64,000 bases of DNA from Setoptus koraiensis (taxonomy: Eukaryota > Animalia > Arthropoda): assembly GCA_048013815.1 (NCBI GenBank), contig CM106586.1, forward strand, positions 11,470,001 through 11,534,000, read 5' to 3'. Below the pieces are notes generated by a model that saw only the letters and a list, made by a program, of their open reading frames with translations, was not told the origin of the DNA and made no database searches. A program made the translations under genes and the position numbers. Shown piece after piece: positions 467 through 59,195 of this stretch; within the stretch, counting starts at the first letter, position 1; each line of letters begins with the position of its first letter.

Positions 467-1876
467 ATGGCTATTTCATCACAGAAGCGTCTGTCCTACG
501 AAAGGAAACTGGTTGCTCTGAGGAAAGGCCCCATCAACGATCATCAATTGACTATTTGGTGCGAAAAAGCCGTCAAGAGTGTGGTGAGAATATTGGGCAA
601 CAAGGTTAGCCAATTGAAACTTTTGGAGAGTTGCATCAATCTAAAGGATCCCCAAACGGACTGTGTACTCGTTCCAAAGCTGTTCAATTGTAGATTGAGA
701 ATATCGCATAGACGCGGCATGGCCAATGTGGTCTATTGTCGCCTGTGGCGCTGGCCCGACATACAGTCGCACCATCAAATTGAGTCCAGTTCCACCTGCA
801 AGAACCCGTTTGATCCTAGAACGTCCACTAGTATTTGTATAAACCCTTATCACTATGAGCGCATTCAAAAGACACAACATGTTACATTCAAGTCTCTAAT
901 ACCGCCCGATATTTCAACATCTAACGAGGATTATGACCAATCGTCGGCGTCGCCACAACAGCAACAGTGCCAACTGTTCAAGATGGCCACTTGTGCCTCT
1001 CAACTACAAGCAAAAAGATCCAGCTCCTCAGATAAAACAAGCCCACTGCCATCTGTTTCGGGCCTTGGTAATCAACATCAACATGCCAACACTGCCAACA
1101 CTCCAAGCACTCCTGCAAAACATCAGCTGGGCATAGCAAGCCTATATGACACAAACGAGGATCCTTACGCAATACCTAATCAAAATAGTCAAAATTGTCT
1201 ATCTCATTGTGCTGAGATGGAGGAAGAAGAAGAGTCGGGATGTCAACTTTTCATTGATGTACTAAGCCAGCCTGTGTATTGTGGCGGCAAGCCATTCTAT
1301 TTTGTCGATAGTAAATATTGGTGCTATATACTATATTATGAATATTCCCATAGGGTAGGCGAAAAATTTCAAACTAGATCACCCTCACTCGTTATAGATG
1401 GACACACCGGCTCGCCAAGCTCAAAAAGATTCTGTTTGGGATCGTTCGCAAATCCAAGCCGCAAAGAAGGCGTTAGCAAGGTAATAGGTCTCATAGGCAA
1501 AGGAGTCAGGTTGAATTATGTCAACGGTGATGTTTACGCCGAATGTTTGGGTGGCTCAAGTGTGTTTGTGCAAAGTTGCAATTGTAACAGACGTTACAGA
1601 TGGCATTCAGCTACTGTCATCAAGATTGAAACTGGAAATCATTTGAAAATTTTCAACACTAGAGATTTCGCACAATTAATGGCCAAAAGCATTGCTCATG
1701 GTTATGACGCAGTTCAATGGTTGTCCAAAATGTGTACAATAAGACTCAGTTTTGTTAAAGGCTGGGGTCAAGAGTACAAGAGAACCACCATATTCTCAAC
1801 ACCTTGCTGGATTGAGATTCAATTGAATGGGCCGCTCGAATGGCTAAATAAAGTACTAAGTCAAATGAGGTGCTAG
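467..1876 (+). CDS. Divergent R-SMAD (Smad2/3-like L3 loop), MH1+linker+MH2, no C-terminal SSxS
   Basis: Single-exon ORF (first ATG 467). MH1 motifs YCRLWRWPD and CINPYHYER. MH2 motifs KRFCLG, GKGVRL and CTIRLSFVKGWGQEYKRTTIFSTPCWIEIQL. Ends VLSQMRC*. Confidence 0.93.
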   Translation: MAISSQKRLSYERKLVALRKGPINDHQLTIWCEKAVKSVVRILGNKVSQLKLLESCINLKDPQTDCVLVPKLFNCRLRISHRRGMANVVYCRLWRWPDIQSHHQIESSSTCKNPFDPRTSTSICINPYHYERIQKTQHVTFKSLIPPDISTSNEDYDQSSASPQQQQCQLFKMATCASQLQAKRSSSSDKTSPLPSVSGLGNQHQHANTANTPSTPAKHQLGIASLYDTNEDPYAIPNQNSQNCLSHCAEMEEEEESGCQLFIDVLSQPVYCGGKPFYFVDSKYWCYILYYEYSHRVGEKFQTRSPSLVIDGHTGSPSSKRFCLGSFANPSRKEGVSKVIGLIGKGVRLNYVNGDVYAECLGGSSVFVQSCNCNRRYRWHSATVIKIETGNHLKIFNTRDFAQLMAKSIAHGYDAVQWLSKMCTIRLSFVKGWGQEYKRTTIFSTPCWIEIQLNGPLEWLNKVLSQMRC

Positions 1877-2577
1877 CTGTGATTGGAGGAGATTTTTTCC
1901 CTCTTCTCTACCGCAGCGGATGTCATGGCGCAAGTCGCAAGAGATATCTGCATAGTTTTAATCTGTTGCTGATATCGATTTATTTATTATAATCGCATTT
2001 CTTTGTCATACTCATAAAAAAGAAAAGAATCCCCTCGATGATTGCATCTTGGACCATGTCCTTCTCCTGTAGCGTGTCAGTAATTATAAAATCATTCAAA
2101 TAAAAGTAGACAGATTGTTAGTGCAATAATGACAATTGCGACGTCTAACGAACAAAAAACTCAAGCAACAATAGTGGTCATGCTATGAATGCTCGCAAGT
2201 TGTGCCGGTCTGAATGATAAATTGTGATTGCTCTATCAGCAATCATCGGGCAGGCTTGAAGGAATTTCGGAATGCCATATGGAGTAATGCCGATTTTTTT
2301 TTGTTGCCATGAGTTCTGGCCTCTATCTGTGCGTAGCTTCGGATTGAATGAAATCGATGGAAAGATAGCATTCTTATTATTTTTAACCATTCTATCTTCT
2401 ATTTTTGGATCGATATCTAAGTGTCTGCGATGTTTCACATACGAGACATGATCGCATGCATTCTCATCTACGAATAGAATTTTGCGAAGGCAACGCGTTC
2501 GAAAATCTGTCTAAGATAAGCGAGTAGTTTTCATTGAAATTTTTCAGCTAATCAGTGTTCAAAATACCAGCTTAGAT

Positions 2578-3876
2578 ATGATGAATAGACTTCTATCAAT
2601 GAGCTTGATTTCAAGCTTGTTTATTATATATTTTCAATTCTCACCCGCGCACTCTACCTGTTTTAGAGGTAATTGTTCTCCTGAAGAAGAAGAATGTGTA
2701 GAAAGTTTCAATCAAGTGACGAAACTAAGCCATTTGAAAGTATTTTTGAGTAAACTGGAAATCGGACTCGATAATGGATATTTCACTTCAACAGATGTCC
2801 GTAACTGTCTCGATTCAAAGAATATCGAAAGAAAGACCGTAAGTGGATTCCTATCATTAATCAAGGAGGCAGAAGAAAACAGAATCTGTTACCCCGAAAA
2901 TGTCGAGAACCTAGTTTCTCTGCAGCCATATCTTTCACAGATAAACAAGGAAAAAGGAAAACCGCGCCTCGCTCCATGGTGGGATAAGTTTGTTCGACAA
3001 ACAATTATAAAGTGCAAAAGCTCTCTCATGCAGAAATTGGATCCGATGAGGCCAGATGGACTTTTTTTCAAAGGTATTGTAAATTTAGCTGCAAATTTCC
3101 GTTGGCGGCACACACTTAATTTCATCAGGGAAGAATATTTTGAGATATCTGACGAATATCTTGCTGGAGAAGATTTCAAAGGAGCAGATTATGTTGATAG
3201 GACATCCGGGAGAATTAATGAACTATTGGATGTTGAATTATCAGAGTTTGATAATGTGAATTCGAGAAAATCCAAGCAACCAAAGTTCGATATTGAAATG
3301 AGTCGAAATGAATTTAGCCGAGTTGTTGAGATGTTCAGAGAGTGCAATTATGTCAAGTCCTACAGAGATTTCCTGTTCTACCCTGTTTTAGAACTGTCAC
3401 AATTAGGATACGATGACAGTGCTCTAAAATTAGATGATAAGATAGCTAGTTCTAGATATATACATATTTGGCTTGTGTCAATCAAAACGTGCATGCTACT
3501 GGATCATGTTAAGGTCTTGAAATTGACAGATACAATGGTGCGATTCAAGGCTGGTCTGGTTTGGGTACAAGACAATATGGATGAGCTAGGTTCAGATTTG
3601 CTTTCAACAGGAGGAGCAATAGAATATTCGCAAGCGAGGAAGTTTCTGGTGCATCCATCAGAGTTGGACGGTTTCAGAGAATTCGATGATGAACTTATAG
3701 AGAAAATCTCGCCACCAAGCAAAGATTATATTAAGTTGATGAGAAATAATGACAGATTGTCAACTGTACGCAAAAACATCAAGACCGCGGTGCATTCTAC
3801 GAGGTTCTTGAAATTGATAGCCGAATATATCAAAACAACCGATGCATTTGGAACTTCAAAGTATAACATGTGGTAA
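2578..3876 (+). CDS. Orphan secreted protein, 432 aa, N-terminal signal peptide
   Basis: Long ATG-started ORF with hydrophobic N-terminus (LLSMSLISSLFIIYFQFSPAHS) followed by Cys-containing mature region. No family recognised. A paralogous copy follows. Confidence 0.75.
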   Translation: MMNRLLSMSLISSLFIIYFQFSPAHSTCFRGNCSPEEEECVESFNQVTKLSHLKVFLSKLEIGLDNGYFTSTDVRNCLDSKNIERKTVSGFLSLIKEAEENRICYPENVENLVSLQPYLSQINKEKGKPRLAPWWDKFVRQTIIKCKSSLMQKLDPMRPDGLFFKGIVNLAANFRWRHTLNFIREEYFEISDEYLAGEDFKGADYVDRTSGRINELLDVELSEFDNVNSRKSKQPKFDIEMSRNEFSRVVEMFRECNYVKSYRDFLFYPVLELSQLGYDDSALKLDDKIASSRYIHIWLVSIKTCMLLDHVKVLKLTDTMVRFKAGLVWVQDNMDELGSDLLSTGGAIEYSQARKFLVHPSELDGFREFDDELIEKISPPSKDYIKLMRNNDRLSTVRKNIKTAVHSTRFLKLIAEYIKTTDAFGTSKYNMW

Positions 3877-6177: not shown

Positions 6178-8122
6178 ATGTGCACAAATGGTGAGTAAAT
6201 TTTCTTCAGTATTTCGACATGAACATAAGAAGAATTAGTAACTCACACCTCAAATTGTTTCCATCTTTCAACACTCCTACACAGTGAACACATTCGCCTG
6301 TTTACCTAGAACGACCAGAGGTACTCCACTCGTTTTGGGAGGCGATCCCAAAGGGAAAAATTTTCTCTACCCCAATGGAAACAGCATAGTCATTAGGAAC
6401 ATTGAGAATCCTAGCATATGCGATATTTACACTGAGCATTCAACCCTCACTACTGTAGCTAAATACTCACCCTCAGGATTTTACATAGCTTCAGCGGATC
6501 AACATGGAAAGGTGCGCATATGGGACACTACTCAGAAGGAACATATATTAAAAAATGAATTTCAACCATTTGCTGGCACTATCAAAGATCTGGCCTGGTC
6601 AGCGGACAGTCAGAGAATAGTGGCCGTTGGTGAGGGTAGAGAGAGATTTGGCCATGTGTTCGCCATGGAAACAGGAACATCAATTGGTGAGATTGCTGGA
6701 CATAGTAAACCAATCAATTCTTGTGACTTCAAGCCGACTCGTCCATTTAGAGTTATAACTGGATCAGAGGATACATTTGTGGGTATATATGAAGGGCCTC
6801 CTTTCAAATTTAAATCACAAATACAAGATCATATTCGTTTTGTCCAAGCCGTCCGTTTCTCTCCCAACGGTGAACTATTTGCTTCTGCCGGTTTCGATGG
6901 AAAACTGTTCATCTATAACTCTACCGATTATAGCAAAGTGGCAGAATTCGGCGCCCCAGCTCACAAAGGCGGTATATATGCTTTATACTGGTCACCAGAT
7001 AGTAAACAGCTTTTGAGTGCATCAGGTGATAAAACTTGCAAAATATGGGACGCCACGACTCAAGCAATGGTTACCGAGTTCACTCTTGGTAATGACGTCC
7101 TGGATCAACAGGTCAGTTGTCTATGGCAAGAGCCCTATTTGCTTTCAGTATCTTTATCAGGATTCATCAACTACTTGGACAGAAACTCACCTAGCAAACC
7201 TATTCGTGTAGTTAAAGGGCACAACAAGTCGATAACGTCGTTTGCTGTTGCTTCGTGTGAGCCAAACAAAGGAGATGATGGTGACAAGACATTATTTAGT
7301 GGTAGTCATGACGGTTATATAACTCAGTGGACAGCACGAACTGGAGAACATGATCGTGTCGGAGGTGGAGAACATACAAATCAAGTTCAAGATATGGCAG
7401 TCTCGCAGGATGCCGTGTACACTTGTGCCTTAGATGATACCGTTAGAGCTATCGATTTAAAAACTAGACAATATTCTACCACTCAACCTCCTATTAAGTT
7501 GACCTCACAACCGAGAGGCTTAGCTGCGCTGGACAATCAAAAAACATTGGTTGTTGCACAAGTCAATAATATAGGTGTCTTTATAGATCAACAACAGAAA
7601 TCATCATTGCCCATTAAGTATGAGCCGAGCAGTGTAGACGTCCACTCATCGCATGTTCAAATAGCTGTTGGAGGCTCATCAGACAGTAAGGTTCATATTT
7701 ATTCGCTTGAAACTGGCAACTTTAATCTCAATCAGACACATGAATTGAGCCACCGAGGCGGTGTAACTGATGTCAAGTATTCTCCAGATGGAAAGTTTCT
7801 GGCAGCTTCCGATGCTAACCGTAAGATTGTGCTTTACCTAGCCAATGATAAATACAATTTGGCTCACGATATCGAATGGGGCTTCCACACAGCTAAAGTT
7901 AACTGTCTCTCTTGGGCACCTGACTCTAACCGTCTTGCTAGCGGTGGCTTGGACACAAATCTCATCATCTGGTACGCCGATAAGCCTTCCAAACACATTA
8001 TAATTAAGCATGCACACCCGCAAAGTCAGATAACCCGTGTTGCCTGGATTGATAATGAACTAGTTGTGTCTGCTGGTCAGGATGCCAACATAAAAACATG
8101 GAACGTCAAAGAGCAAGAATAA
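6178..8122 (+). CDS. WDR1: WD repeat protein 1 / actin-interacting protein 1
   Basis: Exons 6178-6190 and 6285-8122 (phase-1 intron GTGAGT..ACAG, 94 nt) give 616 aa. N-terminus FACLPRTTRGTPLVLGGDPKGKNFLYPNGNS is AIP1-typical; multiple WD repeats. Confidence 0.95.
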
Positions 8123-10146
8123 GCCTGAATGTTTGTCCCGATGAAGTTTACACTTGATAAACTAGACAGAATCATTGGACCTTTTACTTAACTAAATAAA
8201 GTTAATGTCAACTTCTCAGGTGCACGATATATGATCTGCACTTGATAGGATCAAATATCCTAGTGTCACTAAACTACAACTATCGGCTTTCCAATGTCAC
8301 CGCATGCAAATTCAGGATTTTGCTACTACGCTCTGATATTTGCCATATTCTCTCATTTGACATAGATTGATTCCTTGCATACAGTGACATCAACGAAAAA
8401 AAAAGAAGCGTACGTTTTACTGGGAGAGTTTCCAAGATTTGCCCATTTCTGGAGAAGAGCAGTTTTTTTGCCTGACAAGTCTTGACGCACTAGCCTCGAT
8501 GAAACGGATTTCTAGAGCCCTCTGATAAAAATCAAGAGCGGGGTCTCCATGATTTTGTCGGCTTGACGTGAGAGTGTATTTGAGCCTCAAACTTGGAGGC
8601 AAGGTTGCACAAAGACAACCCAAACTACAGGTTGTGCGCCAGCCTTGTTCACTAATGCATGCAGGAGCCGACTTGTGCCTAGCTATAATTAGTGGCCTGT
8701 CCAGGCACAATCACAGCAACAATTGCAGAGATCTCAGTACTGAGCGGCACAATGTTGTGAATTGTTTATGGTCGGTCTTAGGAGGCAGTGCAGTCCTTTG
8801 TTTGATGCCAATTGTTTAACTTTGTTGCACGCCGAGCTAACTTTTGGGTGCATTGGGCTGCCAGATTACACAATCGACAGTGTCACGCCGTCTAGACAGA
8901 CGGCCAGGCGCCAAAAGGGGGGGGGGGCGGATTTCTGCTGGCTTGAGCACTTGGCTCGAAGAAATGCCACACCGGCGTGATGTTATGCAACTGAAAAGTG
9001 TGGAGCCGGTGCGCTTTGAAAGTGTCTCGTGTTTCACCAATGCAGCGTGATTTCTTACGTGATTTCAAGCACCTCGAGAGCGCCGACAGGTTCTCGCCGA
9101 ACACACACACACAGGCGCGACCGGAGAGTGGCGCGTTTTGCCGCTCCGGCAAAAACATGCATCAGAGCCGGGCCAAACGGGCTCGCGGAAAGCCCGGCAT
9201 GCTGTCGGGTGTGCATGTGCGGCCCGGGCACGGGTCCGCATGCACCGCCGGATCAATCTAGAAAAAGACGGGGCAATCAGCGGGCTCAATTTGGGCAATG
9301 CTGGCAAAGTGAGCGCGTTGGGGATTTGTCGCGCTTTGCGGCCAGCGAGCCTGTGGAGCGCGAGCGGGCAAACGGGGAAAACGCTTCCGGAGGCTCACAT
9401 TTGCCGGGTGAAATCACCGAAGGGGGTTGTTTGCGGGGCGAAAGCTTTCGCCCTGAGCATGTCGCAGTGCTTGCTTGCTTGCTATAGCTGCAACTGGCAA
9501 CTGGCAGACACGGTTGCTGCAGCGGGGGCAAAGCACACGTTGTGCGCCCCTTGTTTTCTTTTGTTTGGCTGGTGCGCTGTGTATGCGCACAAAATGTAAA
9601 ATGTATACACTTTAGTGAGGCGCGACGCATCGAATACTGCGTACTGCAATGGGTGGGCACATCAAACCAGCCACTTGCCGCTGCTGATGCTACGGTGCCT
9701 TGCACAAGCGTTGGGACGAAATGCGCGTCTAGTGCCGCCACAGCACACAATGTACAGGGACGGTTAATGTGCCCAGCACAGGGCGCATGCTTGCGCTGTG
9801 TCTGGCGTGCTTCACAACGCACAAACAGCGCCATTTTACCATCTGCGCGTGTGTGCCACGCAGAGCGTTGGATGGCTGCGGATTCGCTTTGCCCGTCCTC
9901 CCGACGCAGCACATATAACATCCAATTGGCAATCGCTACCATTGCCATACTGCCGCCAGTAGCATGAGCACTAGCGACTGTACCATCGGCTAGCGCACAC
10001 ACACACACACACTCACACTCGCTAAATAGACAAACACACGCACGCACTCTGTGGCGAAGTACAGTAAGGCGTGTAAAGGAGCAAGGTAGGGCGCGTACAG
10101 AATTGTGTGCGAGCGATAGTAGCAGAGCGAGCGGGGGTAGAGGGCT

Positions 10147-10171
10147 GTTTCGCGCAAAACAGCAGTTTTCA
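10147..10171 (+). promoter_or_regulatory. 25-bp element with consensus E2F site TTTCGCGC upstream of AP-4
   Basis: GTTTCGCGCAAAACAGCAGTTTTCA; exact reverse complement at 12307-12331. Confidence 0.75.
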
Positions 10172-10483
10172 AGTGAAAATAAATGAAAATATAAATATAT
10201 TTTGTGCATTGCCATTGCAGCGTATAGAATAAAAACACAAAACAACATCATTATCCCACTAAAGGCTGACTGCTATTATTATTATCAATATTATTATTAT
10301 TACTATCAACAATATATATTATTATTGCAATTCAAAATTGGCATCACACACACACACGCATACACACGCACACACAGGGGGGATATTCTTTATCATTATT
10401 ATCATTATTATTATTATTATCATAATTATTATCACTATTATTACTATATAAATACAATTTATTATAAAAATATCTATATATGA

Positions 10484-10947
10484 ATGATGGACTCAATGGG
10501 AAACGATAAGCGTCTTAGACGCGAAATAGCCAATAGCAATGAGAGGCGCAGAATGCAAAGCATCAACGCTGGTTTCCAATCACTAAGAAGATTATTGCCC
10601 CACAATGATGGAGAAAAATTAAGCAAAGCGGCCATATTACAACATGCCGCCGAATTGATACAACAGATTGAACAGCAAAATCTACAATACAAACGTGTTA
10701 TCACCTCGATTAAAAATGGCACACCACCTTCAATTGCATTGGAGAGCATAGATGACTATCCAGCAAGCAAAAAGTTTAGGCCATCTACGTCACCTCTGCT
10801 TTCACATCAAACTAAAACAGAAGCTAACGTTACATCAGCTGTTAATCATACTGCTCCCAATACCGCTGTCATTCACACAACAGTTACTCAACAACAACAA
10901 CAACAACAACAGCAGCAACAACAGCAGCAACAACCTCAACAACAACA

Positions 10948-10982
<35 letters not shown>

Positions 10983-11287
10983 AGCAACATCAACAGCAGC
11001 AACAACAACAACAGCAACAACAACAGCAGCAGCTACAACAACTACAACAATTACAAACGACAGACCACTATTCTACAACACCTGCATCAGGACCCAGTAT
11101 CAAAACGGAAGAGGGCATATCGAGCCCCAAGAATGATAAACCCTCTGCCAAGGCGGCCATCGCATTACCGCTGGAGGTACCCTTTAACGCCGAGGCCACC
11201 GTTCAACAGCATCAGAATTTGGACACGATTTTTGAAGCTATAAAACACTTAGAAGGGGATAAATTTGGCAATGCGCTTACGGCATGA
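10484..11287 (+). CDS. TFAP4: bHLH transcription factor AP-4 (cropped-like) with polyQ
   Basis: RREIANSNERRRMQSINAGFQSLRRLLPHNDGEKLSKAAILQ is the AP-4 bHLH. C-terminal QNLDTIFEAIKHLEGD matches the conserved TIV motif. Confidence 0.93.
10889..11051 (+). repeat. CAA/CAG trinucleotide repeat encoding polyglutamine in AP-4
   Basis: Directly visible CAA/CAG run, about 50 codons mostly Gln. Confidence 0.95.
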
Positions 11288-11360
11288 TCAAATCTCTATA
11301 ACCTAATAATAAAGTATATTGTAAATCTTTTTATTGTTTAATTACTATCATCCATAAATT

Positions 11361-12167
11361 TCAATCAGCAATGTATAACTCTATCAATCCCTCTTGAGGA
11401 CCAAGTCCAAATATGAAATCATCGTCTCTTGGTGGTGGCAATAATTGTGTCATTGGGCCAGGCTGATAATCATCATTGTTCACCTCATTGGGTTCCTTGG
11501 ATATTGATGATGAATCAGCCGTATCGACTCCATGCAATAATTGTACTGTTATGGGTCCATTATGGGATTTTATGTGAATTCTGTAGCGTTTTTTGTCGTT
11601 GTGGGCCTGATTTTCTTCGTGCAAATTGTTAGAATTGTTATCATTGGTGTGAGTCTGGTTAGGTATGGGTACTTCTAGTTGTGTACCAACCGGTGCTTGT
11701 ACAGCGAATATATTATCATCATCGAATATTTTAATTAAGTCGTCATGTTCAACATAAGCGTACTTTTTACAAGTGGTGTCGTCTGTCAGATTAAATATGG
11801 ATTGTCTACACCACCCGTAAAATGTGTCGATTTCACTTTCTTTCATTTTCAATTCTTTGATTTCATTCTTGATCTCTGTTAACTTATCCGTAACCTCTCT
11901 GGAGTTGCAACCGGGCCCGGCACCAAGCCATTGGATTGAGTTTTTTGATTTTTTCTCTATCAAGCCAATGCCTTCTAGCACATTAGTGATATCGTATATT
12001 CTTCTTTTTTGTCTGACTGCTAATGTGTCGGCGGCCGTCTTGAGATCCAGAATACCTTCATTTGACTCCTGTAATAATGTAACAAATTTTGTAGTTAGTA
12101 AACCTAAGCTCTTTTCGTGCCTCGAAGACGGTCCATTCTCCTCCATCGAGTCCATTATATCATTCAT
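11361..12167 (-). CDS. E2F4: E2F4/5-like transcription factor, 268 aa
   Basis: [15 protein letters not shown]...[31 protein letters not shown]-binding domain, coiled coil, marked box, and C-terminal DFIFGL..EGLIELY pocket-protein-binding motif. E2F4 versus E2F5 cannot be resolved. Confidence 0.92.
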
Positions 12168-12306
12168 ATATAGTCAATCGTAATTATATAATAATGATAA
12201 TGAATAAATGGCGCTAGCGTGATTGTGATATCAATATTTGATAGCAATGGTATTCAAAATGTTGATAACAGTAGTGGTAATAATAACGATTATGATGATA
12301 ATAAAA

Positions 12307-12331
12307 TGAAAACTGCTGTTTTGCGCGAAAC
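12307..12331 (-). promoter_or_regulatory. 25-bp E2F-site element upstream of E2F gene, identical to 10147-10171
   Basis: Plus strand TGAAAACTGCTGTTTTGCGCGAAAC. Further E2F-like sites at 12627-12640 and 12655-12662. Confidence 0.75.
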
Positions 12332-13379
12332 TGCCCCCGCCTGCCAACTTATGAGCTCGCATAGACAAAAATCCTGAACGCGCCCTATACCTTTCACTGT
12401 GCATGCCTCACTAGCAGCGCCAGTACAAACTGCGTTGTGTGAGTGTGTGTGTGTGTGCAGAAAACGTTGTGTGCTGTGGGGATAGAATTTGTGCGCAGAG
12501 CAGTTGCAGAGCGTGTGCCCCTTCACACTTACACACACACACGCACACACACACACTTTTTCCTTTGCCGTCTATTCGGCGTGTGTGCGCTACTCACACA
12601 CACACACGGACAGAAAAGGAACAGTGTTCCCGCGGCGAAAAGCGTTCGTTTTCATTTCGCGCTATTACTTTTACAACAAATATTGGCAGTAACGACAAAA
12701 TAAAGATGGTAAAACATCGACGCCACTAGCTATTTACAATGATATATCGTTGCTCATTATGGCGCTCATTATTCGCCAAACTGTTATGATTTATCACGAC
12801 CGACTTCCAGAAAAGTCTCTCTCTCTCTCTCTTGCTGGTTGTCATGTTACGCGCCGACTGGCGACAACTCACCACCCCGTCGGCTGGTGGTCAGTTGAGC
12901 CCGGCTTTTCGCTAATTAGTCATGCAATCCGTCTTCTTTTGTCTCGCTCTCTCGCCATCAGTTTGCCCACAAACCCAAACTAGCCTTTCGTTAAGCTCCA
13001 TTTTGAGATCTTGTTATCAAGATCACACAACACCACTTACAAAGATAGTGAGGCTGCGGCAACAGCAAATCGACTATCAACTAGTTCATTAGGGAGGCGA
13101 CCTCTCGAGGAACTTTGTCGAACTTGTTATTGTGCACTTTTTCATCGCACTGCCACCGTGGCAGCAACCGCTCTCTGAACAGGTGATCCATAACCGCTTC
13201 TGTTACCTATTTCCATGTGATGTGATTATTTTATTTTTTCGACAATTGCGTAACAGTACTAACAACGAAACCCGGAGACAAAAGATCTTTTCATTTATCT
13301 CATGATATCTATCGAGGATTAATTAAGAGTGCTGCCCGCAACACAGTAAAACACACAGATAGGAGATACGGTGGTTATC

Positions 13380-18885: not shown

Positions 18886-19500
18886 AAATTGATCGATGAT
18901 AGCGTACTCAACTGGAGTGTTAATGTAAGGCAAGTGATGGCTGTAGGAGTTTCTGGTACGTAACTTTCACAACTTGGTTGTCCACTGAACAAAACGCATT
19001 GTGCTTACAGCGCTTTTTAAAATTATTCAAAGAGAGAGAGAGAGAGAGAGAGAGAATGCCGTGTGGAAAGTGGCGCACCTTTATCAGTGCAAGTCCACAC
19101 AATTGTTGGAGTGTTTCGGCCCAGCAGCATTCTATAAAACACAGTGAGCTGCACATGGCACAGAACGTTCAGCAATGGTGCGTGTGCCTCCCATGTTGCG
19201 TAATTATCGTACGGGATGCAGGCTCAGAAAATTAACAATAGAGTAAATTTTTTACCTTGTGTGCGATAAGTGCCCCATGCGTACTATACTGTGTGTCTTG
19301 TACTGTATTGCATCAAATCATGCACTGCGGGCTACAGCGGCTGCAGAATCCGTGAGTTCTTTACATACTATGAGTGTTGCTGGGCAGTCGAGACATCCAC
19401 TTTATGTACAAATCACAGTGATGATACTGTTGCGGGCGACGATGTGGCAGATCACCTGGCGTGTGGGCAGGTGGTCAGCGTGGACACGGCAGCACGTAGA

Positions 19501-20009
19501 TTTTTGTTTTTTTATGTTGGTTGTTTTATGGTGATTTGATTTTGTGTGTGTTTTTTTGTTTTTGTTTTTTTTTGTTTTTTGTTGTTTTTTGTGTTTTTTG
19601 TTTTGTTTTTTTTTGTTTTTTTTTGTTTTTGTTGTGTTTTTTTTTTGTTGTGTTTTTTTTTTGTTTGTTTGTGTTTTTTGTTTGTTTTTTTGTTTTTTTT
19701 GTTTTTTTGTTGTGTTTTTTTTTGTTTTTGTTTTTTTTGTTTTTTTTGTTTTTTTTTGTTTTTGTTTTTTTTTGTTTTTTTTTGTTTTTTGGTTTTTTTT
19801 GTTTTTGTTGTTTTTTTTGTTTTGTTGTTTTGTTTTTTTGTTTTTTTGTTTTTTTGTTTGTTTTTTTTTGTTTTTTTGTTGTTTTTTTTGGTTGTTTTGT
19901 TTTGTTTTTTTTTGTTGTTTTTTTGTTTTTTTTTTTTGTTTTTTGTTTTTTTTTTTTTTTTTTTTTTTTTTTGGGCGTGTGTTTGTTGTTTGTTGTTTTT
20001 TTTGTTTTT

Positions 20010-20040
<31 letters not shown>

Positions 20041-23000
20041 TTTTTTTTGGTTTTGTTTTTTTTTGTTTGTTTTTTTTGTTTTTTTTTTTTTTTGTTTTGT
20101 TTTTTTTTGTTTTTTTTTGTTTTTTTTGTTTTTTTTTGTTTTTTGTTTTTTTGTGTTGTTTTTTTTTGTTTTTTTTGTTTTTTGTTTTTTTTTGTTTTTT
20201 TTTGTTTTTTTTTTTTTTTGTTTTTTTGTTTTTTTTTTTTTGTTTTGTTTTTTTTGTTTGTTTTGTTTTTGTTTGGTTTTTTTTTTTTGTTTTGTTGTTT
20301 GTTTTTTGTTTGTGTTTTTGTGTTTTTTGTTTTTTGGGTTTTTTTTTGGTTTTTTTTTTTTTTTTGTTTTTTTTTTTTTTTTTGTTGTTTTTTGTGTTTT
20401 TTTTGTTTTTTTTTGTTTTGTTTTTTTTTGTGTTTTTTGTTTTTGTTTTTGTTTTGTTTTTTTTGTTTTTGGTGTTTTTTTTTGTTTTTTTTTTTTGTTT
20501 TGTTTTTTTTTGTTTGTTTTGTTTTGTTTTGTTTTTTTTTGTTTTGTTTTTTTTTGTTTTTTTTGTTTTTTTTGTTTTTGTTTTTTTTTTTTTTTTGTTT
20601 TTTGTTGTTTTTTTGTGTTTTTGTTTTTTTTTGTTTTTTGTTTTTTTGTTGTGTTTTTTTTTTTTTTTTGTTGTTTTTGTGTGTCTATTTTTTTTTTTTT
20701 TGTTTTTTGTTTGTTTTGTTTTTTGTTTTGGGTTTTTTTGTTTTGTTTTTTGTTTTTTTTGTTTTTTTGTTTTGTTTTTTGTTTTTTTTTGTTGTTTGTT
20801 TTGTTTTTTTGGTTTTTGTTTTTTTTTGTTTTGTTTTTTTTGTTTGTTTTTGTGTTTGTTTTTGTTTTTTTTTTTTTTTTTTTGGTTTTTGTTTTTGTTT
20901 TTTTGTGTTTTGTTTGTTTTTTTTTGTTGTTGTTTTTGTTTTGTTTTTTGTTGTTTTTGTTTTTTTTGTTTGTTTTTTTTTGTTTTTTGTTTTTTTTTGT
21001 TTGTTTTTTTTGTTTTTTTTTGTTTTTATTTTTTTTTTTTTGTTTTATTTTTTGTTTTTTTTGTTGTTTTGTTTTTGTTTTGTTTTTTTGTTTGTTTTTT
21101 TTTTTGTTTTTTTTGTTTGTTTTTTTTGTTTTTTTGTGTTTTTTTGTTTTTTTTTTTTTTTTTTTTTTTGTGTTTTTTTGTTTTTTTTTTTTTTTTGTTG
21201 TTTTGTTTTTGTTTTTTTGTTTTGTTTTTTTTTTTTTATCTTTTTTTGTTTGTTTTTTTAATTTTTTTTGGTTTTGTTTCTTTGTTTGTTTTTTTTTTTT
21301 TTTTGTTGTTTTTTGGTTTTTGTTTTTTTGTTTTTTTTTGTTTTGTTTTTTTTGTGTGTGTTTTTTGTTTTTGTTTTTTTTTGTTTTTGTTTTGTTTTTT
21401 TGTTTTTTTTGTTTTTTGTTTTGTTGTTTTTTTTTGTGTTTTGTTTTTTTTTGTTTTTTTGTTTTTTTTTTTTTTTTTTGTTTTTTTGTTTGTTTTGTTT
21501 TTTTTTTTTTTTTTTTGTTTTGTTTTTTGTTTTTTTTTGTTTTTTGTGTTTTGTTTTTTTGTTTTGGTTTTTTTTGTTTTTTTTTTTTTTGTTTTTTGTT
21601 TTTTTGTTTGTTGTTTTTTGTTTTTTTGTTTTGGTTTTTTTTTTTGTTTTTTGTTGTTTTTTTGTTATTTGTTTTTGCTTTTTTTTGTTTTGTTTGTTTT
21701 TTTGTTTTTTGTTTTTTGTTTTTGTTTTTTTTTTTGTTTTTTTTCGTTTTTTTTTTTTGTTTTGTTTTTTTTGTTTTTTGGTTTTGTTGTTTTTTTTTTT
21801 GTCTTTGTTTTGTTTTTTTTTGTTTTTTTTGTTGTTTTTTTTTGTTTTGTTTTTTTGGTGTTTTTTTGTTGTTGTTTTGTTGTTTGTTTTTTTTTGTTTG
21901 TTTTTGTTTTTTTTTGTTTTGTTTGTTTTTGTTTTTTTGTTTTTTGTTGTTTTTTGTGTTTTTTTTTGTTTGTTTTGTTTTTTGGTTGTTTTTTTTTGTT
22001 TTTGTTTTTTTTGTTTTGTTTTTTTTTTTTTTTGTTTTTTTTTGTTTTTTTGTTTTTTTTTTTTTTATTTAGGTTTTTTGTGTGTTTTTTGTTTTTTTTG
22101 TGTTTTTTTTGTTTTTGTGTTTTTTGTTTTTGTTTTTGTTTTTTGTTTTTTGTTTTTTGTTTTTTTTTGTTTTTTGTTTGTTTTTTTTGTTTTTGTTTTT
22201 TTTTGTTTTTTTGTTTGTTTTTATTTTGTTTTTGTTTTTTTTTGTTTTGTGTTTTTTTTGTTTGTTTTTTTTTGTTTTTGTTTTGTTGTTTTTTTTTTTT
22301 TTTTTGTTTTTGTTTTTTGTTTTTTTTGTTGTTTTGTGTTTTGTTGTTTTTGTTTTGTTTTTGTGTTTTTTTGTTTTTTGTTTGTTTTTTTGTTTTTTTT
22401 GTTTTGTTTTTTTTTTTTTTTTTGTTTTTTGTTGGGCCATTTTTTTTGTTGGGGGTTTTTTTTTGTTTTTGTTTTTTTGTTTTTTTTTTTTTTGGGGGGT
22501 GTTTTTTATTTTTTTTTTTTTTTTTTTTGTTTTTTTTTGTTTTTTTTTGTTTTTTTTTGTTTGTTTTTTGTTTGTTTTTTTTTATTTTTTTTGTTTTGTT
22601 GTTTTGGTGTGTTTTTTTTTGTTTGTTTTTTTGTTTTTTGTTTTTTGTTGTTTTTTGTTTTTTTTTGTGTGTTTGTTTTTTTTTTTTTTTTTTGTTTTTT
22701 TTTGTTGTGTTTTGTTTTTTTGTGTTTTGTTTTTTTTTGTTGTTTTTTTGTTTTGTTTTGTTTTTTGTTTTTTTTTGTGTTTTTTTTTTTTTTGTTTTTT
22801 TGTTTTGTTTTTTTTTGTTTTTTTTTGTGTGTCTTTTTTTGTTTTTTGTTTTTTTGTGTTTTTTTGTTTTTTTGTTTTTTTGTTTGTTTTTTTTGTTTTT
22901 TTTTGTGTTTTTGTTTTTTGTTTTTTTTTGTTTTTTTTTGTTTTTTTTTGTTTTTTGTATATGTGTATATTTTGTGATATTTGTTTTAATTTTAAATTTA

Positions 23001-24425
23001 AATTTTTATATAAATTTTTATTTATATTTTTTTAATATTTTTTTGTATTAATATAATATATTAAAATAATAAATTTTATATTATAAATTAATAATATTAT
23101 AATATTTATTTAAATAAATTATTTAATTATATTTAAAAAATATAAATAAAATTTAATATAATATTTAAATATTAAATATTTAAATAAATAATTTTTAAAA
23201 AAAATAATTAAAATTATAAAAAAATATTTTATTTTAAATAATAATAAATAATTAATATATATATAAATAAAAAAATTATAAATAAAATAAATAAAAATAT
23301 AATAAAAAATATATAAAAATATAAAATAAAAAATAAAAAATAAAAATAAAATATATATAAAAAAATAAAAAATAAAAATAAAAAAATTATATATAAAATA
23401 AAATATAATATAAAAATATAAATAAAACAAAATATAAAATATATATATTATAAAAAAAATAAAAAATAAATAGGACAAAAATTAAAAAAAAATTATAAAA
23501 ATTTAAAAAAATAAAAAAAAATAAAAAAATAAAAAAATAAAAAAAAATAAAAAAATAAAAAAAAATAAAAAAAATATAAATATTAATATTATATATATAA
23601 AAAAATAAAATATAAAAATATATAAAAAAAATATTAATATTAATAAAAAATTAAAAAAAAATAAAAAAAAAATAAAAAAATAATAAAAATAAAAATAAAA
23701 AAATATAAAATATATAAAAAAATAAAATATAAAATAAAAAATAAAATAAAAATAAAAAAAATATAATAAATTATAAAAAAATAAATAAAAAAATAAAATC
23801 AAAAATATATAAATATAAAAAAAAAAAAAATATAAAATAAATATATATATATAAAAAATATAAATAAAAAAAAAATAAAAAATATATAATAAAAAAATAA
23901 TATAAAAAATATATAAATATAAAAAATAATATATAAAATAAAAAAATAAAAAAATAAAAAAATAAAAATTAAAATTAAAAAATAAAAAAAAGAATAATAT
24001 AAAAAATAATATAAAATATAATAAAATAAAAATATAAAAAATATTAAAATAAATGAAAAAATTAAAATTAAAAATAAATAAAAAATAAAATATAAAAAAA
24101 ATATATATATAAAAAATTATATAAAAATAATTAAAAAAATAAAAATAAAAAAATAAAAAAAAAAAAATTAAATAAAATTAAAAATACATATAAAATATAA
24201 AATATAAACAAAAATATATATAAAACATAGAAAATAAAAAATATAAAAAATATATATCAGAAAATATATAATAAATAAATAAAAAAAATATATAAATTAA
24301 ATGAAATATAAAAAATTATAAATAAAAATAAAAAAAATAAAAATATAAATACACATATTAATAGAATAAAAATATATAAAAAAATATATATATAATATAA
24401 ATTAAAAACAAATCTAAAAAACAAA
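19501..24425. repeat. ~4.9 kb aperiodic low-complexity block (T/G-only then A/T-only), probable sequencing/assembly artefact
   Basis: 19501-22960 has almost no A or C; 22960-24425 has almost no G or C. No fixed period; edges grade into normal sequence. Confidence 0.85.
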
Positions 24426-55072: not shown

Positions 55073-58000
55073 GTTGTTGACGGCTATTTGTAACTGATCA
55101 TAAATATCCGTTTATAAATAAGACAATAATTTACACAAATGTTTTTGGGCGTGTTGATGAGCCTGTGTTGAGATTGTGCGATAATTTCAATGGATATTGA
55201 ATGGTGACAATGGGTGAATAATGGATTGGGCGAGGATAAAAAAGAAAAAATTCATTGTTTGTTGTTCATTTTAGGCACACACACATGCGCTGCGTTTGCA
55301 CATTATGAATCGATGTGCTTCGATGTCGATATTTTCGATTACAAGCTTACTGATGAAGTGTGTGCTCGTCGATGATATTTTCTATTGTTTTTGTCCTTCG
55401 TTGAAACGATAATAGCAGTGGATCATCTTGATTTTACGTGAACATAACGGTTCCAACATGCTGACAAACGGCTGACGGGCTGGCTTTGTTTGTATTGTGG
55501 ATTGGTGATGATAATTATAAAATTGTACAGTAGCTAGGACTGTTGCAAGTGCATGTGCTGGTCATACAAATTGTGTGATACAATTGATCGTAACGATGGT
55601 GGCTAGATGTGAGTCTCATATGATCAATTCGAAGGAGCAAACACAATATGCTGGGCATGTGTATTCAATAGTGTTTACCGCTGCTGTGACAACCACTTGC
55701 CTGCCATTTGTGAGTGAGTGTGTGTGTGTGAGCGAGTGTGTGGAAAAGTGATACCATTTATTACTTAATAATAACGATAATGACATAAGTCAACGTCTAC
55801 ATTTCGATGCATTAGTATAATACGTGTATATGTAATAGTAATGATATAATAGTATAAATAATGATGATATATATCGACGACAGCAACGGCAAGAATAATA
55901 ATAATAATAATAATAGTAATAATAGTGATAGTAATAATAGTGCAAGTGATGCTAGTATAGGGTGTGAGGACCAAGCGGCGTATGCACAGAAACACCTGCG
56001 CAACACAGAAGCACAGATAGTGAAAAGTAGTATTGTGTGCCTGTGTTGTACTGTGGCGCTAAACACGCTCAAACTCAAGCTTACGCACGAACTGTGCGAT
56101 TTAAGCAAGCACATGTTTTTCTGGTGCACTTAGATTAGTTTACAAAAGCTCCGCGAGGGCGGCGCTGCACTCCATTCTTCGTTGGACGAATTCTGAGCAG
56201 CGCCTCTGTTGGATATTTCTTAAAACATCGGTGCACATTGGAAGCAACGCGCAGTGTTTGTGCGAGAAAATGCACTGTGGAAGGCAGCGTAGCCTTTTTA
56301 GTTCAAAATACGTCGCTTGCTCCTCACACCCAATAATAATGGTAATAACAAGTAATGCGGCGCTGAACGCGAGCGAGCGACAAATAAGAACGAATTAAAA
56401 GACACACACAGCCCTGCTGTTCTGTTCCGTTTGAGCACGCTCGTTTTGTTCCGCGCGCACACGCGTGCCGTTGAGTAGCGTTTGCATAGTGTTTGAAATC
56501 GGCACACTGTGTGTAAACATAAATTGCCTTAGGTGAGCGGCCCGTGGCGGCGGCGGCGGCGGTGCATGCACCACCAGCACAACGATGCATGCACCAGCAC
56601 GACGACGATGCGACAAAAACAAGCCATGCATCATCTCCGCACGCTTCGTTCGTTCTATCGTTCGCTGGCTAGCTCTTTTGAACGCCAGGTTCGCTGGTAA
56701 TCACTTTCGAACAAGGCGCCCCTGCGAAGACCAGCCCGGCAAGACCGCCGAACAATCGCCAATTACGTATGTTGCTTGTGTGTGTCCATTTTGTTGATTA
56801 TTATCATTATCATTATTGCTTTTTCTTGGAATTCGCGCTATTGATGCAATTGCACGAACAAGCCACCAACTGCTACAAATTGTCGACAGCCACGGCCGGC
56901 AAGTAGCGACTACCATTGGCAAGCGCTCCATTTTCAATTGTGCTGTTGCGCAATTGTTTTGTCTCGTTTATTGCTAGCCCAGTCACTCACAAGCGCCCCA
57001 AGAGTCTCGATTTGATTCTGTCTAGACCACAGGTAACAGACTTTCCGCTGCAAGGGGCCAGCTCGCCAGCGCAGCCAGTCTGAGTGCACAGTTGGTGGGC
57101 TTGCCTAATGGACGGCAGCCGATACGCCTGTCAGCGGCGACGCCGACGACGACGACGACGACGACAATCATCTCGCACCGGGCACGGGTAGCCGAATCAA
57201 TGAAAATAAGCGATAGGTGAGATGGGCAAGATTTGAAGGTTACCGTGTGTATGCTTGGCGTGCCATTATATCGGCGCTCGGCCGGTGCCGGGCGGCCAAT
57301 GTGTCGTTCCGACGTGACGTCATAAAAAATGAACGCTTCGGTTGCACGGCTCACTGCAGGCGACGGCCATCGCTGGATTGACATGAATTTGAGACACACC
57401 GGCGGCCACTAGATACTAACAAGCACGCGAAATCCTTTGTCCACTTCATCACGATGCGCCCGGCGCAACAACGGGCCGCCACATAACGGGCCGCCACAAC
57501 GACCGGCCGCTGGCCATCATCACCGGGGGCGCAGTAGATTAGGCTCGGGTCGAGCCAGCGCGTACTCGCTCGCCCAAAGAAATCGTTGTGCCAGTTGAGA
57601 GCCAGCTCTAATAACAAGTGACAAGTGCCAAAGTAACTAGTAAGCCCTCGCGCGTCATGTCAGTATCGTCAGTTGCGAAAAAAATATCACACACTTACAC
57701 ACACACAGTAAAACTGGCATTGTCTGGGGGCGATAAGCTCGCTCTTGAAATTGTCGGCCGGCAGCGGGCGAATGGATCATCTCTCTAATGGAACAACATT
57801 GAAAAATTCGAGCCTCGACTGTTTTCTTGACGGCGCCCCAGTCGCTCTGTTGGCGGCCCGCGCCGTCTGTCAGTCTCGCTGTTTGTGGGCGCCTGTCTCG
57901 CTGTTGTTCGTTGGTCCGTCTTTATGCCGCTAGTCTAGTTATGCAAATAGCAACGATGCGATAGATAGCGCTCGACCGGGGGGGGGGGGAGCAGCCATCA

Positions 58001-58835
58001 TCAGCGAAAGATTGGTCTATTATCTATCGCAGACACAGAGATAGATAGATAGAGAGCGAGTTTAAAAATAAAACGGCGTCTATCCCTCATGCCATGCGAC
58101 CCACACAGATTATGCAACAGCATCTGTTTGCGTGCTATATCCATTATCGTTTTTTCAAACACACACACACATATGTCAAGATAGTTAGATACTGCCTGAC
58201 TCAGGCAGCCCGAGTGTGCCTACACACACACAAGCTGGAGCCCGGCTGAAATCGTCTAGTCTAGTCGCGATACCAACGGCGACAACAGCGACAGCGACAA
58301 CAACAGCGACAACGGCAACGCAATAGCGACGACAGCCACGACAAAAAGAGAAAAGAAACAAGCCCTTTTATCACAACCATCTGGCAGCCGTGAATATGTT
58401 GGCTGTTGGGCACTGTAGCCTGACTATCAGTTAGTCGGCACGCGCAGGTGTATTATCTCAATCTAACAATGCCGGTGGGCTCGCTGTTATGCAATGGACG
58501 TAATCTGATCTCATTCAGTTACTGGCATCTGTTCGTTATTGAATATTGAATAAATTACCGGCAATAATTACACTCCACATAATCACTTGCGCTAATCAAT
58601 TGTTTGTGTCACACACACAATATACGGCGAGGCGCGAACTGACGGAAACTGTCGGCGAACTGTCTAAAACTGTCTGTCGACACCTCATAATTGTGCCCAA
58701 AAAGGCTGCCAAGTTCAAGTGTAATAACTCTGCAATTAGTAGCGACTCGCTAGACTCACAAGCCGGACGCGTTTTTATGCGTTGGCCGTAGCCATCACGA
58801 ACCGCATTGCACGTTCGACAACAGCTCGTTAAAAT

Positions 58836-58917
58836 GGTTGGATGGCCGAGTGGTCTAAGGCGCTGGTTTAAGGCACCAGTCTCTTCGGGGGCGTGGGTTC
58901 GAATCCCACTTCAGCCA
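58836..58917 (+). tRNA. tRNA-Leu(AAG): tRNA-Leu(AAG)
   Basis: A box TGGCCGAGTGG, anticodon arm CTGGT-TTAAGGC-ACCAG, long variable arm, B box GGTTCGAATCC, acceptor GGTTGGA/TTCAGCC, T6 Pol III terminator at 58923-58928. Confidence 0.97.
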
Positions 58918-59195
58918 GATAGTTTTTTCGCAAATATCGCGCCCGCACCGAGAATTGTTGACATTGCTCGAGGAATGGGCCGAAAAAAAGATTTGGCCAG
59001 AAAATTCGAAGCACTCGCCAGGGTGTGGGCGCTACTCGGGCGGACATGCCGCCAACTGGACATTTTATGTAGTGCACGTACTGTGTACATGTTTATTTTT
59101 GACACTTTTATTCACGTTATTGACACGATCATTATTATTGCTAATATTATTATTATTATTAGCACTATTACATCATGCGTCTATCATCTCATTCA

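Follow-up and report, generated by a model that had tools for sequence, protein, structure and literature searches.

Probable Capture of an E2F Promoter, Leader and First Codons by the Adjacent AP-4 Gene of an Eriophyoid Mite

At this locus, two genes for unrelated transcription factors, AP-4 and E2F, begin with the same sequences, which raises the question of how the 5′ ends came to be shared. The original prediction was that one gene had acquired the promoter, 5′UTR and first codons of the other. The present analysis supports it, and comparison with other species adds a direction, from E2F to AP-4. Judging from the sequence, we consider it likely that AP-4 took the promoter, leader and first codons of E2F through a local inverted duplication, and that the function is still shared.

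Locus layout and gene identities

The window (the whole 64-kb stretch of DNA analyzed) belongs to the genome of an eriophyoid mite, which is poor in introns. The AP-4 (TFAP4/cropped) gene and the E2F4/5-like gene are convergent, both with intact open reading frames, and the features of the locus are collected in Table 1. The pair had been described as an inverted unit of facing genes. The convergent arrangement with inverted cassettes stood, but since the genes are tail to tail and not head to head, each cassette lies at one outer end of the unit. For a close relative (L001), an independent Logan assembly bears out the predicted arrangement, having the same convergent pair, the same spacer (72 of 73 positions) and the same kind of E2F start; L001 sequence covers neither copy of the 25-mer described below, and its support consists of the gene pair, the spacer and the E2F start.

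Both gene identities were confirmed by Pfam domains. The AP-4 product has an HLH domain (6.8e-18, residues 12–62) with the AP-4-type basic region RREIANSNERRRMQSIN, and its best named homologues are AP-4 or cropped, with Aceria tosichella AP-4 among them. Orthology is also backed by the kept neighborhood, as AP-4 adjoins the E2F4/5 gene in L002, L005, L006, L007 and L010, which points to a local origin as well. AP-4 homology starts at DKR (~10505). The E2F product contains a single E2F/DP winged-helix domain (E2F_TDP, 2.1e-27) followed by a coiled-coil/marked-box domain (E2F_CC-MB, 5e-25). Its named matches are E2F4, E2F4/5 or E2F5-like, the best being A. tosichella E2F4, and its C-terminus resembles what we take to be the pocket-protein-binding motif D-Y/F-x-F-x-L-x3-EG-I/L-x-D/E-L-F/Y. 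As had been stated, the two genes are not homologous, their coding sequences being unrelated (z = −0.8 versus shuffles). Since synonymous codon differences from L001 far exceed non-synonymous ones (47 versus 7 in E2F, 16 versus 3 in the C-terminal part of AP-4), the comparison indicates that both genes are still under purifying selection.

Table 1. Features of the AP-4/E2F locus (positions within the window).
Feature	Position	Strand	Remarks
(CA)n + CTCACAC, AP-4 side	9995–10018	+	Possible distal boundary; inverted match; TRF CA array
GC-rich block, AP-4 side	10063–10104	+	Contains TAGGGCGCGTACAG; local alignment to 12370–12412 (−)
30-mer, AP-4 side	10142–10171	+	Putative core promoter; 29/30 match to 12307–12336
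E2F octamer TTTCGCGC, AP-4 side	10148–10155	+	
AT-rich TAT-repeat leader, AP-4	10172–10473	+	Probable 5′UTR; TRF arrays; internal (CA)n 10345–10376
Start block, AP-4 side	10474–10499	+	CTATATATGAATGATGGACTCAATGG; E2F-derived; alignment to both E2F starts (window, L005)
AP-4 (TFAP4/cropped) bHLH gene	10484–11287	+	267 aa; Pfam HLH
PolyQ tract in AP-4, CAA/CAG	10889–11050		
Spacer between the two stop codons	11288–11360		73 nt; AATAAA signal on each strand
E2F4/5-like gene	11361–12167	−	Cassette donor; 268 aa; Pfam E2F_TDP + E2F_CC-MB
Start block, E2F side	12143–12173	−	CTATATATGAATGATATAATGGACTCGATGG; encodes MNDIMDSM
AT-rich leader, E2F	12174–12306	−	
30-mer, E2F promoter side	12307–12336	−	29/30 match to 10142–10171
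E2F octamer TTTCGCGC, E2F side	12323–12330	−	
GC-rich block, E2F side	12370–12412	−	Local alignment to 10063–10104
(CA)n + CTCACAC, E2F side	12436–12458	−	Distal cassette end; inverted match; TRF CA array
Additional exact E2F octamer	12655–12662	+	Outside the duplicated part; 495 nt upstream of the E2F ATG

Shared blocks in the 5′ regions

The AP-4 and E2F upstream regions have three blocks in common, whose order is the same on both sides: a GC-rich block (43 nt), a 30-mer and a block over the start codons (26–31 nt). Every shared block listed in the original prediction was found in its place. The identical 25-mer (10147–10171 on the plus strand, 12307–12331 on the minus strand), centered on TTTCGCGC, is exact and extends to a 30-nt inverted pair with one mismatch. 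Allowing up to 3 mismatches, it has just two matches within the 64-kb window, and shuffled sequence gave none. On the AP-4 side, the octamer lies within the near-palindrome CTGTTTC-GCGC-AAAACAG, followed by CAGTT, which may be read as initiator-like. The proximal promoter region of both genes has in this way a canonical TTTSSCGC-type site; the density of the looser TTTSSCGC consensus is about 0.22 per kb, and the window has 6 exact octamers in all. MDSM, predicted at both N-termini, is present in both translations, the AP-4 product starting with MMDSMGNDKR.

Significance was determined by comparing Smith–Waterman scores with those of dinucleotide shuffles. The whole upstream regions scored 61, against 22 ± 3 for shuffles with a maximum of 35. 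The claimed collinear alignment held for the 30-mer and for two further blocks outside the 25-mer: the GC-rich block alone, without the CA repeat and 30-mer, gave z = 6.5 (1 of 1000 shuffles as good), and the start block gave z = 7.1 (none of 1000). The TAT-rich leaders did not differ significantly from shuffles (z = 1.8), with one mid-leader block weakly supported under lenient scoring (5 of 2000 shuffles), and therefore the contiguity of the duplication rests on collinearity. The (CA)n match, not significant alone either, is exact and inverted over 21 nt between the AP-4 side and 12437–12457, but since CA repeats are common in the intergenic DNA of the window, it only suggests a boundary. 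Distal to it, no similarity above shuffles was found (z = 0.6). Significant homology is confined to the 5′ regions of these otherwise unrelated genes. The two copies are 97–100% identical in the 30-mer/25-mer, while the flanks reach about 83% in aligned columns, with many indels. The AP-4 leader has a GC content of 0.10–0.32, unlike the upstream regions of 7 other genes in the window.

Direction of the transfer and alternative explanations

The comparison set consisted of eriophyoid contigs in L-numbered lineages. Close to the N-terminus, about 35 E2F4/5 orthologues carry MDS[IVM]EENG. The MDSM-EENG codons are kept among them, ATGGAYTCNATGGAGGAGAATGG of L005 being plainly orthologous E2F coding sequence. 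About 30 AP-4 orthologues start with ME[TA]KDKRVKREIAN or similar, and none has MDSM. In six of eight lineages (the window, L002, L005, L006, L009 and L011), the 700 nt upstream of E2F contain the exact octamer TTTCGCGC, which was not found upstream of AP-4 in L002, L005, L006 and L007. The additional octamer of the window parallels paired L005 sites at −513 and −483. The 36 nt proximal to the AP-4 start in the window align to the L005 E2F start (z = 6.0) and match none of the AP-4 upstream regions of other species (z from −1.5 to 1.3). Since the MDS[IVM]EENG codons and the octamer belong to E2F orthologues and are missing in the AP-4 orthologues, and the window's AP-4 start matches L005 E2F, the comparison shows that the cassette moved from E2F to AP-4. 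Similarity between the two upstream regions of the same locus gave z = 15 in the window and 1.2, 2.1, −0.6 and 0.7 in four other species; by this measure, the shared cassette is confined to the window's lineage.

In the proposed history, about 0.35–0.5 kb of the 5′ end of the E2F4/5-like gene would have been copied in inverted orientation in this mite's lineage. The copied segment would have extended from (CA)n to the M..MDSM codons, taking in the GC-rich promoter, the palindromic E2F site, what may be an initiator, and the AT-rich leader, and would have been fused in frame to the neighboring AP-4 gene, about five codons before the basic region. The junction lies between ATGG (~10499) and GATAAGCG (~10505), in frame. 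AP-4's own short N-terminus (ancestrally ME-T/A-K) would have been replaced by the copy, which now appears to occupy the site of the expected proximal promoter of AP-4. Later, the copies would have diverged strongly by substitutions, indels and repeat slippage; the 25–30-nt core around the E2F site and the start-codon context were spared, most likely because both copies still work as promoter and translation-start elements. As to the molecular route, we infer that the inverted copy was templated during the repair of a break or by a switch of template in replication; priming may have taken place at (CA)n and resolution at an ATGG microhomology. A single staggered-break inversion was considered and rejected. 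In L005, AP-4, E2F and EMP24 follow each other in the same orientation, and relative to this order only the window's E2F is flipped, with AP-4 and EMP24 keeping their orientation, yet the duplicates enclose AP-4 too. Since they flank AP-4 plus E2F and not the inverted E2F alone, either a complex event or a templated copy made separately would be needed.

For the reverse direction, in which E2F took the promoter and start of AP-4, it can be said that the window sequence alone does not settle the matter, but MDS-x-EENG and the upstream octamer, which E2F orthologues keep and AP-4 orthologues lack, together with the match of the window's AP-4 start block to the L005 E2F start, make this reading barely credible. 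Convergence, with the same binding sites arising separately in two cell-cycle-regulated promoters, would fit the fact that TTTCGCGC is a short, common functional motif and that binding at a gene's own promoter is frequent in the E2F pathway (PMC3484676). Yet the identity (29 of 30 positions) far exceeds an 8-nt site, two more collinear blocks match, with the start codon region included, and the AP-4 genes of four other species have no octamer upstream; by the shuffle tests, convergence is strongly disfavored and its probability is minimal. Both genes could also have separately received the same promoter-bearing mobile or repetitive element, such as a MITE with an E2F site, since the unit ends are inverted (CA)n-CTCACAC and the genome search for further copies covered 64 kb. 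Against such a dispersed repeat, codons of the E2F coding sequence (MDSM), kept in the E2F orthologues of many species, are part of the shared segment, and the shared octamer is ancestral upstream of E2F. Dispersal of the 25-mer was looked for and no third copy was found in the window, JGI metagenome contigs or IMG/VR, nor was a flanking target-site duplication or direct repeat seen at the locus; both results speak against a transposon or MITE with terminal inverted repeats. In addition, the genome of the eriophyoid Aculops lycopersici has few transposable elements (PMC7738191), and we regard the dispersed repeat as very improbable.

An assembly artefact, namely a collapsed or chimeric inverted repeat, might be suspected from the microsatellites that flank the cassette. 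However, the copies are diverged, with many indels, and set in different unique contexts, the L001 assembly reproduces the pair, spacer and kind of E2F start, and both open reading frames are intact, so that an artefact is most improbable. It is also unlikely, though with a little more to be said for it, that the cassette has the same origin but is decaying, with AP-4 run from an older upstream promoter and the 25-mer identity due to recent gene conversion. Short tracts can pass between inverted repeats that lie 2.1 kb from each other, and the identity could stem from short-tract conversion between the inverted copies instead of selection. Upstream of the cassette, 1.9 kb of GC-rich DNA (8123–9994) with no recognized gene could still hold AP-4's original promoter, and the captured ATG is already out of frame. 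On the other side, AP-4 has no in-frame start codons ahead of its basic region except those from the fusion, and therefore the start block at least is in use. Moreover, decay has affected the DNA between the 30-mer and the start block but spared both of these blocks, which fits two selected elements better than one conversion tract.

Promoter function and comparison with known systems

Under the preferred reading, a capture of the E2F 5′ end with shared function, we infer that AP-4 is actively transcribed from the cassette, and that the cassette is E2F-responsive. Both genes are probably under the same E2F-type control; AP-4 transcription would now follow the same E2F/DP regulation, possibly DREAM-type and autoregulatory, as the E2F gene. 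The captured first ATG (10480) is out of the AP-4 frame and opens a 9-codon uORF (10480–10509), with the AP-4 open reading frame beginning at 10484. This uORF may lower AP-4 expression instead of mirroring an E2F-like level. A stronger version is put forward tentatively, at somewhat less than even chances: that an ancient, conserved and possibly single-copy AP-4 had its proximal promoter, 5′UTR and start codon exchanged in place for an inverted templated copy of the autoregulated E2F core promoter next door, and that selection kept the 25-bp E2F-site/initiator core and the start context identical in both copies as the surroundings decayed. If true, AP-4 would be hard-wired into the E2F/DREAM cell-cycle program of a miniaturized, streamlined mite, and a single structural mutation would have rewired a transcription network in a natural case open to dating.

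Most inferences of regulatory rewiring draw on scattered binding sites that were gained or lost. Here, one structural event appears to have moved a whole promoter–leader–start cassette between unrelated transcription factors, with donor, recipient, junction and direction all readable at the AP-4/E2F locus. The uneven decay of the copies amounts to a natural mutagenesis screen that would mark the 25–30-bp E2F-site core and the start context as constrained. The constrained core is a directly testable prediction on eriophyoid promoter architecture, for which we found no promoter data in the A. lycopersici genome paper (PMC7738191). If AP-4 and E2F4/5 are indeed regulated together, the locus would offer, in compact form, a model of regulatory-DNA reuse in streamlined genomes.

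The E2F1 and DHFR promoters of mammals have E2F sites at the core promoter that are palindromic or overlap. In Drosophila, self-occupancy has been described in the RB/E2F pathway (PMC3484676). As in these autoregulated promoters, the mite TTTCGCGC has a near-palindromic context, is found a short way upstream of a gene of the E2F family, and is kept in front of its orthologues; unlike them, the gene is of the E2F4/5 (repressor) type and not an activator, and the putative site has been copied to a non-E2F gene as well. In the staggered-break model for Drosophila, inverted duplications occur at inversion breakpoints. The mite locus is similar in that it has inverted duplicates and an E2F gene turned around with respect to the L005 order, but the duplicates flank AP-4 plus E2F and not the inverted E2F alone.

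As a whole, we read the locus as a clean natural instance of 5′-end capture by partial duplication, a process already known. The chimeric genes jingwei and Sdic are examples of such capture. Further 5′-end or promoter capture chimeras of Drosophila are the tandem-duplication chimeras of D. yakuba (PMC5460883) and Hun Hunaphu (PMC1463047), and the subject has been reviewed (PMC3449122). As in those cases, a donor promoter, 5′UTR and first codons appear to have been duplicated and fused in frame to an unrelated gene body, providing new regulatory DNA. Unlike them, the mite recipient is an ancient conserved transcription factor in its ancestral neighborhood, whose own 5′ end would have been replaced, and not an extra copy; the mite copy is inverted and would come from an adjacent convergent gene; and the donor keeps its own cassette, so that two regulators share one promoter type.

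The convergent AP-4 and E2F genes

The long ORFs of the window are nearly all uninterrupted and code for proteins typical of metazoans (SMAD, Integrator subunit 7, an ABCG transporter, a MAM-domain protein and emp24). The published description of eriophyoid mites is of a compact, intron-poor genome (PMC7738191). Two of the genes, coding for an AP-4/cropped bHLH factor and an E2F4/5-like factor, are convergent. Among named homologues, those of the eriophyoid mite Aceria tosichella rank first for both, and other acariform mites come next; the exact proteins of the window were not found on record. In the E2F4/5 protein tree, the window pairs with L001, a close relative represented by the Logan assembly of SRR33593474 (97% amino-acid identity), and all other eriophyoid sequences sampled form the sister group of this pair.

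The convergent arrangement of the two genes, their spacer and the start of E2F were independently confirmed by the L001 contig. Synonymous and non-synonymous codon differences between the window and L001 were 47 and 7 in E2F, and 16 and 3 in the AP-4 C-terminus; purifying selection acts on both genes. The spacer is identical to that of L001 at 72 of 73 positions, despite the synonymous differences at 47 of 267 E2F codons, and contains one AATAAA signal per gene, which makes an overlap of the two 3′ ends, and constraint on them, probable. At one side, the L001 contig stops within the polyglutamine array of AP-4; at the other, it ends 78 nt upstream of E2F and reaches neither copy of the 25-mer described below. 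Since an AP-4 N-terminal fragment of this sample was also absent from the protein collection, dating of the capture through L001 was dropped.

Features of the AP-4/E2F locus and its surroundings (positions within the window)
Feature	Position	Strand	Remarks
WD40 protein gene	6284-8122		612 aa
GC-rich stretch upstream of the AP-4 copy	8123-9994		~1.9 kb, ~51% GC
GC-rich block, AP-4 copy	10063-10104		
7-nt tandem duplication	10128-10146		GGGGTAG then AGGGCTG
25-mer, AP-4 copy	10147-10171	+	
Start-codon block, AP-4 copy	10474-10499		
uORF	10480-10509		9 codons
AP-4/cropped bHLH factor	10484-11287	+	Pfam HLH 6.8e-18; basic region RREIANSNERRRMQSIN
AP-4 polyglutamine (CAA/CAG) array	10889-11050		~54 codons
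Spacer, stop to stop	11288-11360		73 nt
E2F4/5-like factor	11361-12167	-	Pfam E2F_TDP 2.1e-27, E2F_CC-MB 5e-25
Start-codon block, E2F copy	12143-12173		
25-mer, E2F copy	12307-12331	-	
GC-rich block, E2F copy	12370-12412		
Additional exact TTTCGCGC	12655-12662		495 nt upstream of E2F ATG
T/G tract and A/T sequence	19500-24000		~3.5 kb and ~1 kb
TAT/ATA-repeat tracts	55891-55957; 59118-59169		intergenic
tRNA-Leu(AAG) gene	58835-58918		

Blocks shared upstream of the two genes

The original prediction was that AP-4 and E2F share a colinear homologous promoter, leader and start. Between the coding sequences, no similarity was seen (z = -0.8). The upstream pieces were scored separately against dinucleotide-preserving shuffles. 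The predicted identical 25-mer is present upstream of both genes and extends into an inverted pair with 29 of 30 positions matching; allowing up to 3 mismatches, the window contained 2 matches and no more, and shuffles gave 0. Outside the 25-mer, alignment was also better than in shuffles, both for the GC-rich block 5′ of the 30-mer (z = 6.5, 1/1000 shuffles as good) and for the start-codon block (z = 7.1, 0/1000 as good). A third copy of any block was not found in the whole window by blastn and repeat scan, nor did the 25-mer or the AP-4 fusion junction match JGI metagenome contigs or IMG/VR. Past the CA repeat, the alignment was not significant (z = 0.6). Directly 5′ of the E2F site, the AP-4 copy carries a 7-nt tandem duplication that the E2F copy lacks.

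Leader homology, in turn, was rejected as evidence. The TAT-rich leaders aligned no better than shuffles (z = 1.8), with marginal support for a single mid-leader block, and the L001 E2F leader aligned with the window AP-4 leader at chance level. Since similar TAT/ATA tracts recur in other intergenic DNA near 55.9 and 59.1 kb, the repeat leaders were not counted. The predicted colinearity thus stood for the 25-mer, GC-rich and start blocks, while the TAT leaders and (CA)n tracts contribute architecture and no statistical weight. AP-4 and E2F alone, out of nine genes compared, pass from GC-rich to very AT-rich sequence (GC 0.10–0.32) before the ATG.

Direction of transfer and the AP-4 junction

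E2F orthologue loci were taken from eight other samples. Near their N-terminus, all of the approximately 35 eriophyoid E2F4/5 proteins carry MDS[IVM]EENG and, after it, SSRQEKSLG; the MDSMEENG codons of L005 E2F can be aligned base for base to those of the window. None of the approximately 30 AP-4 proteins contains MDSM; they start with ME[TA]KDKRVKREIAN or a variant. Since the motif is carried by E2F orthologues and not by those of AP-4, MDSM is native E2F coding sequence, foreign to AP-4. In the 700 nt upstream of E2F, the exact E2F octamer TTTCGCGC was found in the window, L002, L005 (twice), L006, L009 (twice) and L011; upstream of AP-4 it was not found in L002, L005, L006 or L007. The looser TTTSSCGC consensus is sparse, at about 0.22 per kb.

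The 36 nt around the window AP-4 start matched the L005 E2F start (z = 6.0), and the window AP-4 upstream region gave no match to other AP-4 upstream regions (z from -1.5 to 1.3). Comparing AP-4 and E2F upstream regions within each locus, z was 15 in the window versus 1.2, 2.1, -0.6 and 0.7 in four other species, in each of which the two regions are unrelated. These orthologue motifs, octamer distribution, start match and within-locus scores together show that AP-4 acquired a copy of the E2F 5′ end, in the window's lineage only. The proposed promoter capture is thereby supported and given a direction, from E2F to AP-4; any functional consequences are putative.

The E2F-derived sequence ends at ATGG (~10499) and AP-4 homology (GATAAGCG, encoding DKR) begins at ~10505, so the fusion swapped roughly four ancestral AP-4 codons for MMDSMGN. 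Between ATGAATG and ATGGACTC, the AP-4 copy is 4 or 5 nt shorter than E2F, the count varying with where the gap is placed. Since L001 E2F has a 3-nt in-frame deletion at the matching spot, this site is indel-prone. The captured first ATG is out of frame in AP-4 and opens a uORF that overlaps the AP-4 start and could reduce AP-4 translation.

Relics of an older AP-4 promoter were not detected by cross-species alignment of upstream regions. In other species, a LisH-WD40 gene stands upstream of AP-4; the WD40 protein of the window was rejected as its orthologue, being only 21–24% identical. The GC-rich stretch between the WD40 gene of the window and the cassette (the E2F 5′ segment or, here, its inverted copy), without recognisable gene, tRNA or Rfam family, could contain the original distal AP-4 promoter. 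Rfam and tRNA scans found no non-coding RNA genes in the AP-4/E2F locus; a tRNA-Leu(AAG) gene lies elsewhere in the window. T-runs interrupted by single G (GC 8–15%, GC skew about +0.95), followed by pure A/T low-complexity sequence, form a tract of unusual length, given that this genome type is described as poor in repeats.

Rearrangement, possible constraint and known systems

Many eriophyoids have AP-4 and E2F as neighbours, in tandem in L002, L005, L006 and L010 and convergent in L007; AP-4 adjoining E2F was not found in L009 or L011. Since L007 falls within tandem lineages in the E2F tree, its inversion is independent, and the E2F gene seems to have undergone inversion repeatedly. The L007 pair (788-3543), convergent as in the window, lacks a common promoter or start. 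The L005 order runs AP-4, two other genes, E2F and emp24, with AP-4, E2F and emp24 on the same strand. In the window, AP-4 and the orthologous emp24 (65% identity) are on the + strand and E2F is flipped; the EF-hand and claudin genes between L005 AP-4 and E2F are absent from it.

The inverted cassette copies flank AP-4 plus E2F together, not E2F alone. A single staggered-break inversion was therefore rejected, since it does not fit copies that enclose AP-4 as well. We infer that E2F was inverted first, or within the same complex event, and that a broken end or stalled fork near the AP-4 start would then have copied the nearby E2F 5′ region on the other strand, with entry close to (CA)n and a return to AP-4 at the start ATGG.

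The 25-mer is centred on a near-palindrome, CTGTTTC-GCGC-AAAACAG, which reads as a canonical E2F site on one strand and as a weaker site on the opposite strand; the CAGTT that follows can be read as initiator-like. The E2F consensus is well established, and overlapping inverted E2F sites occur at the core promoters of mammalian DHFR and E2F1. In Drosophila, RB/E2F-complex proteins sit on promoters of their own pathway genes (PMC3484676). An RNA hairpin in the 25-mer was rejected (folding z about -1.65 in both copies, with no predicted stem common to them). A third exact octamer, outside the duplicated cassette, falls in the DNA that separates E2F from the divergent emp24 gene and parallels the two sites that L005 carries upstream of its E2F, at -513 and -483.

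Both cassette copies retain the 25-mer perfectly and the start block near-perfectly, against flanks with about 83% identity in aligned columns and many indels, and against a covered part of the E2F leader about 61% identical to L001, where the coding sequence is 93% identical. This retention suggests constraint on both copies of the two elements; alternatively, short-tract gene conversion between the inverted copies would account for it.

Overall, the shared AP-4/E2F 5′ region is real, and the comparison supports and sharpens its interpretation as a capture. In the Aculops lycopersici genome paper, no discussion of AP-4, E2F or promoters was found. Among known phenomena, chimeric-gene formation by partial duplication comes nearest; it imports a foreign promoter, 5′UTR and first codons (PMC5460883, PMC1463047, PMC3449122), as AP-4 likewise gained. 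Unlike in those chimeras, a conserved transcription factor at its ancestral location, and not a spare copy, was the recipient; the donor lies next to it, and the captured copy is inverted.
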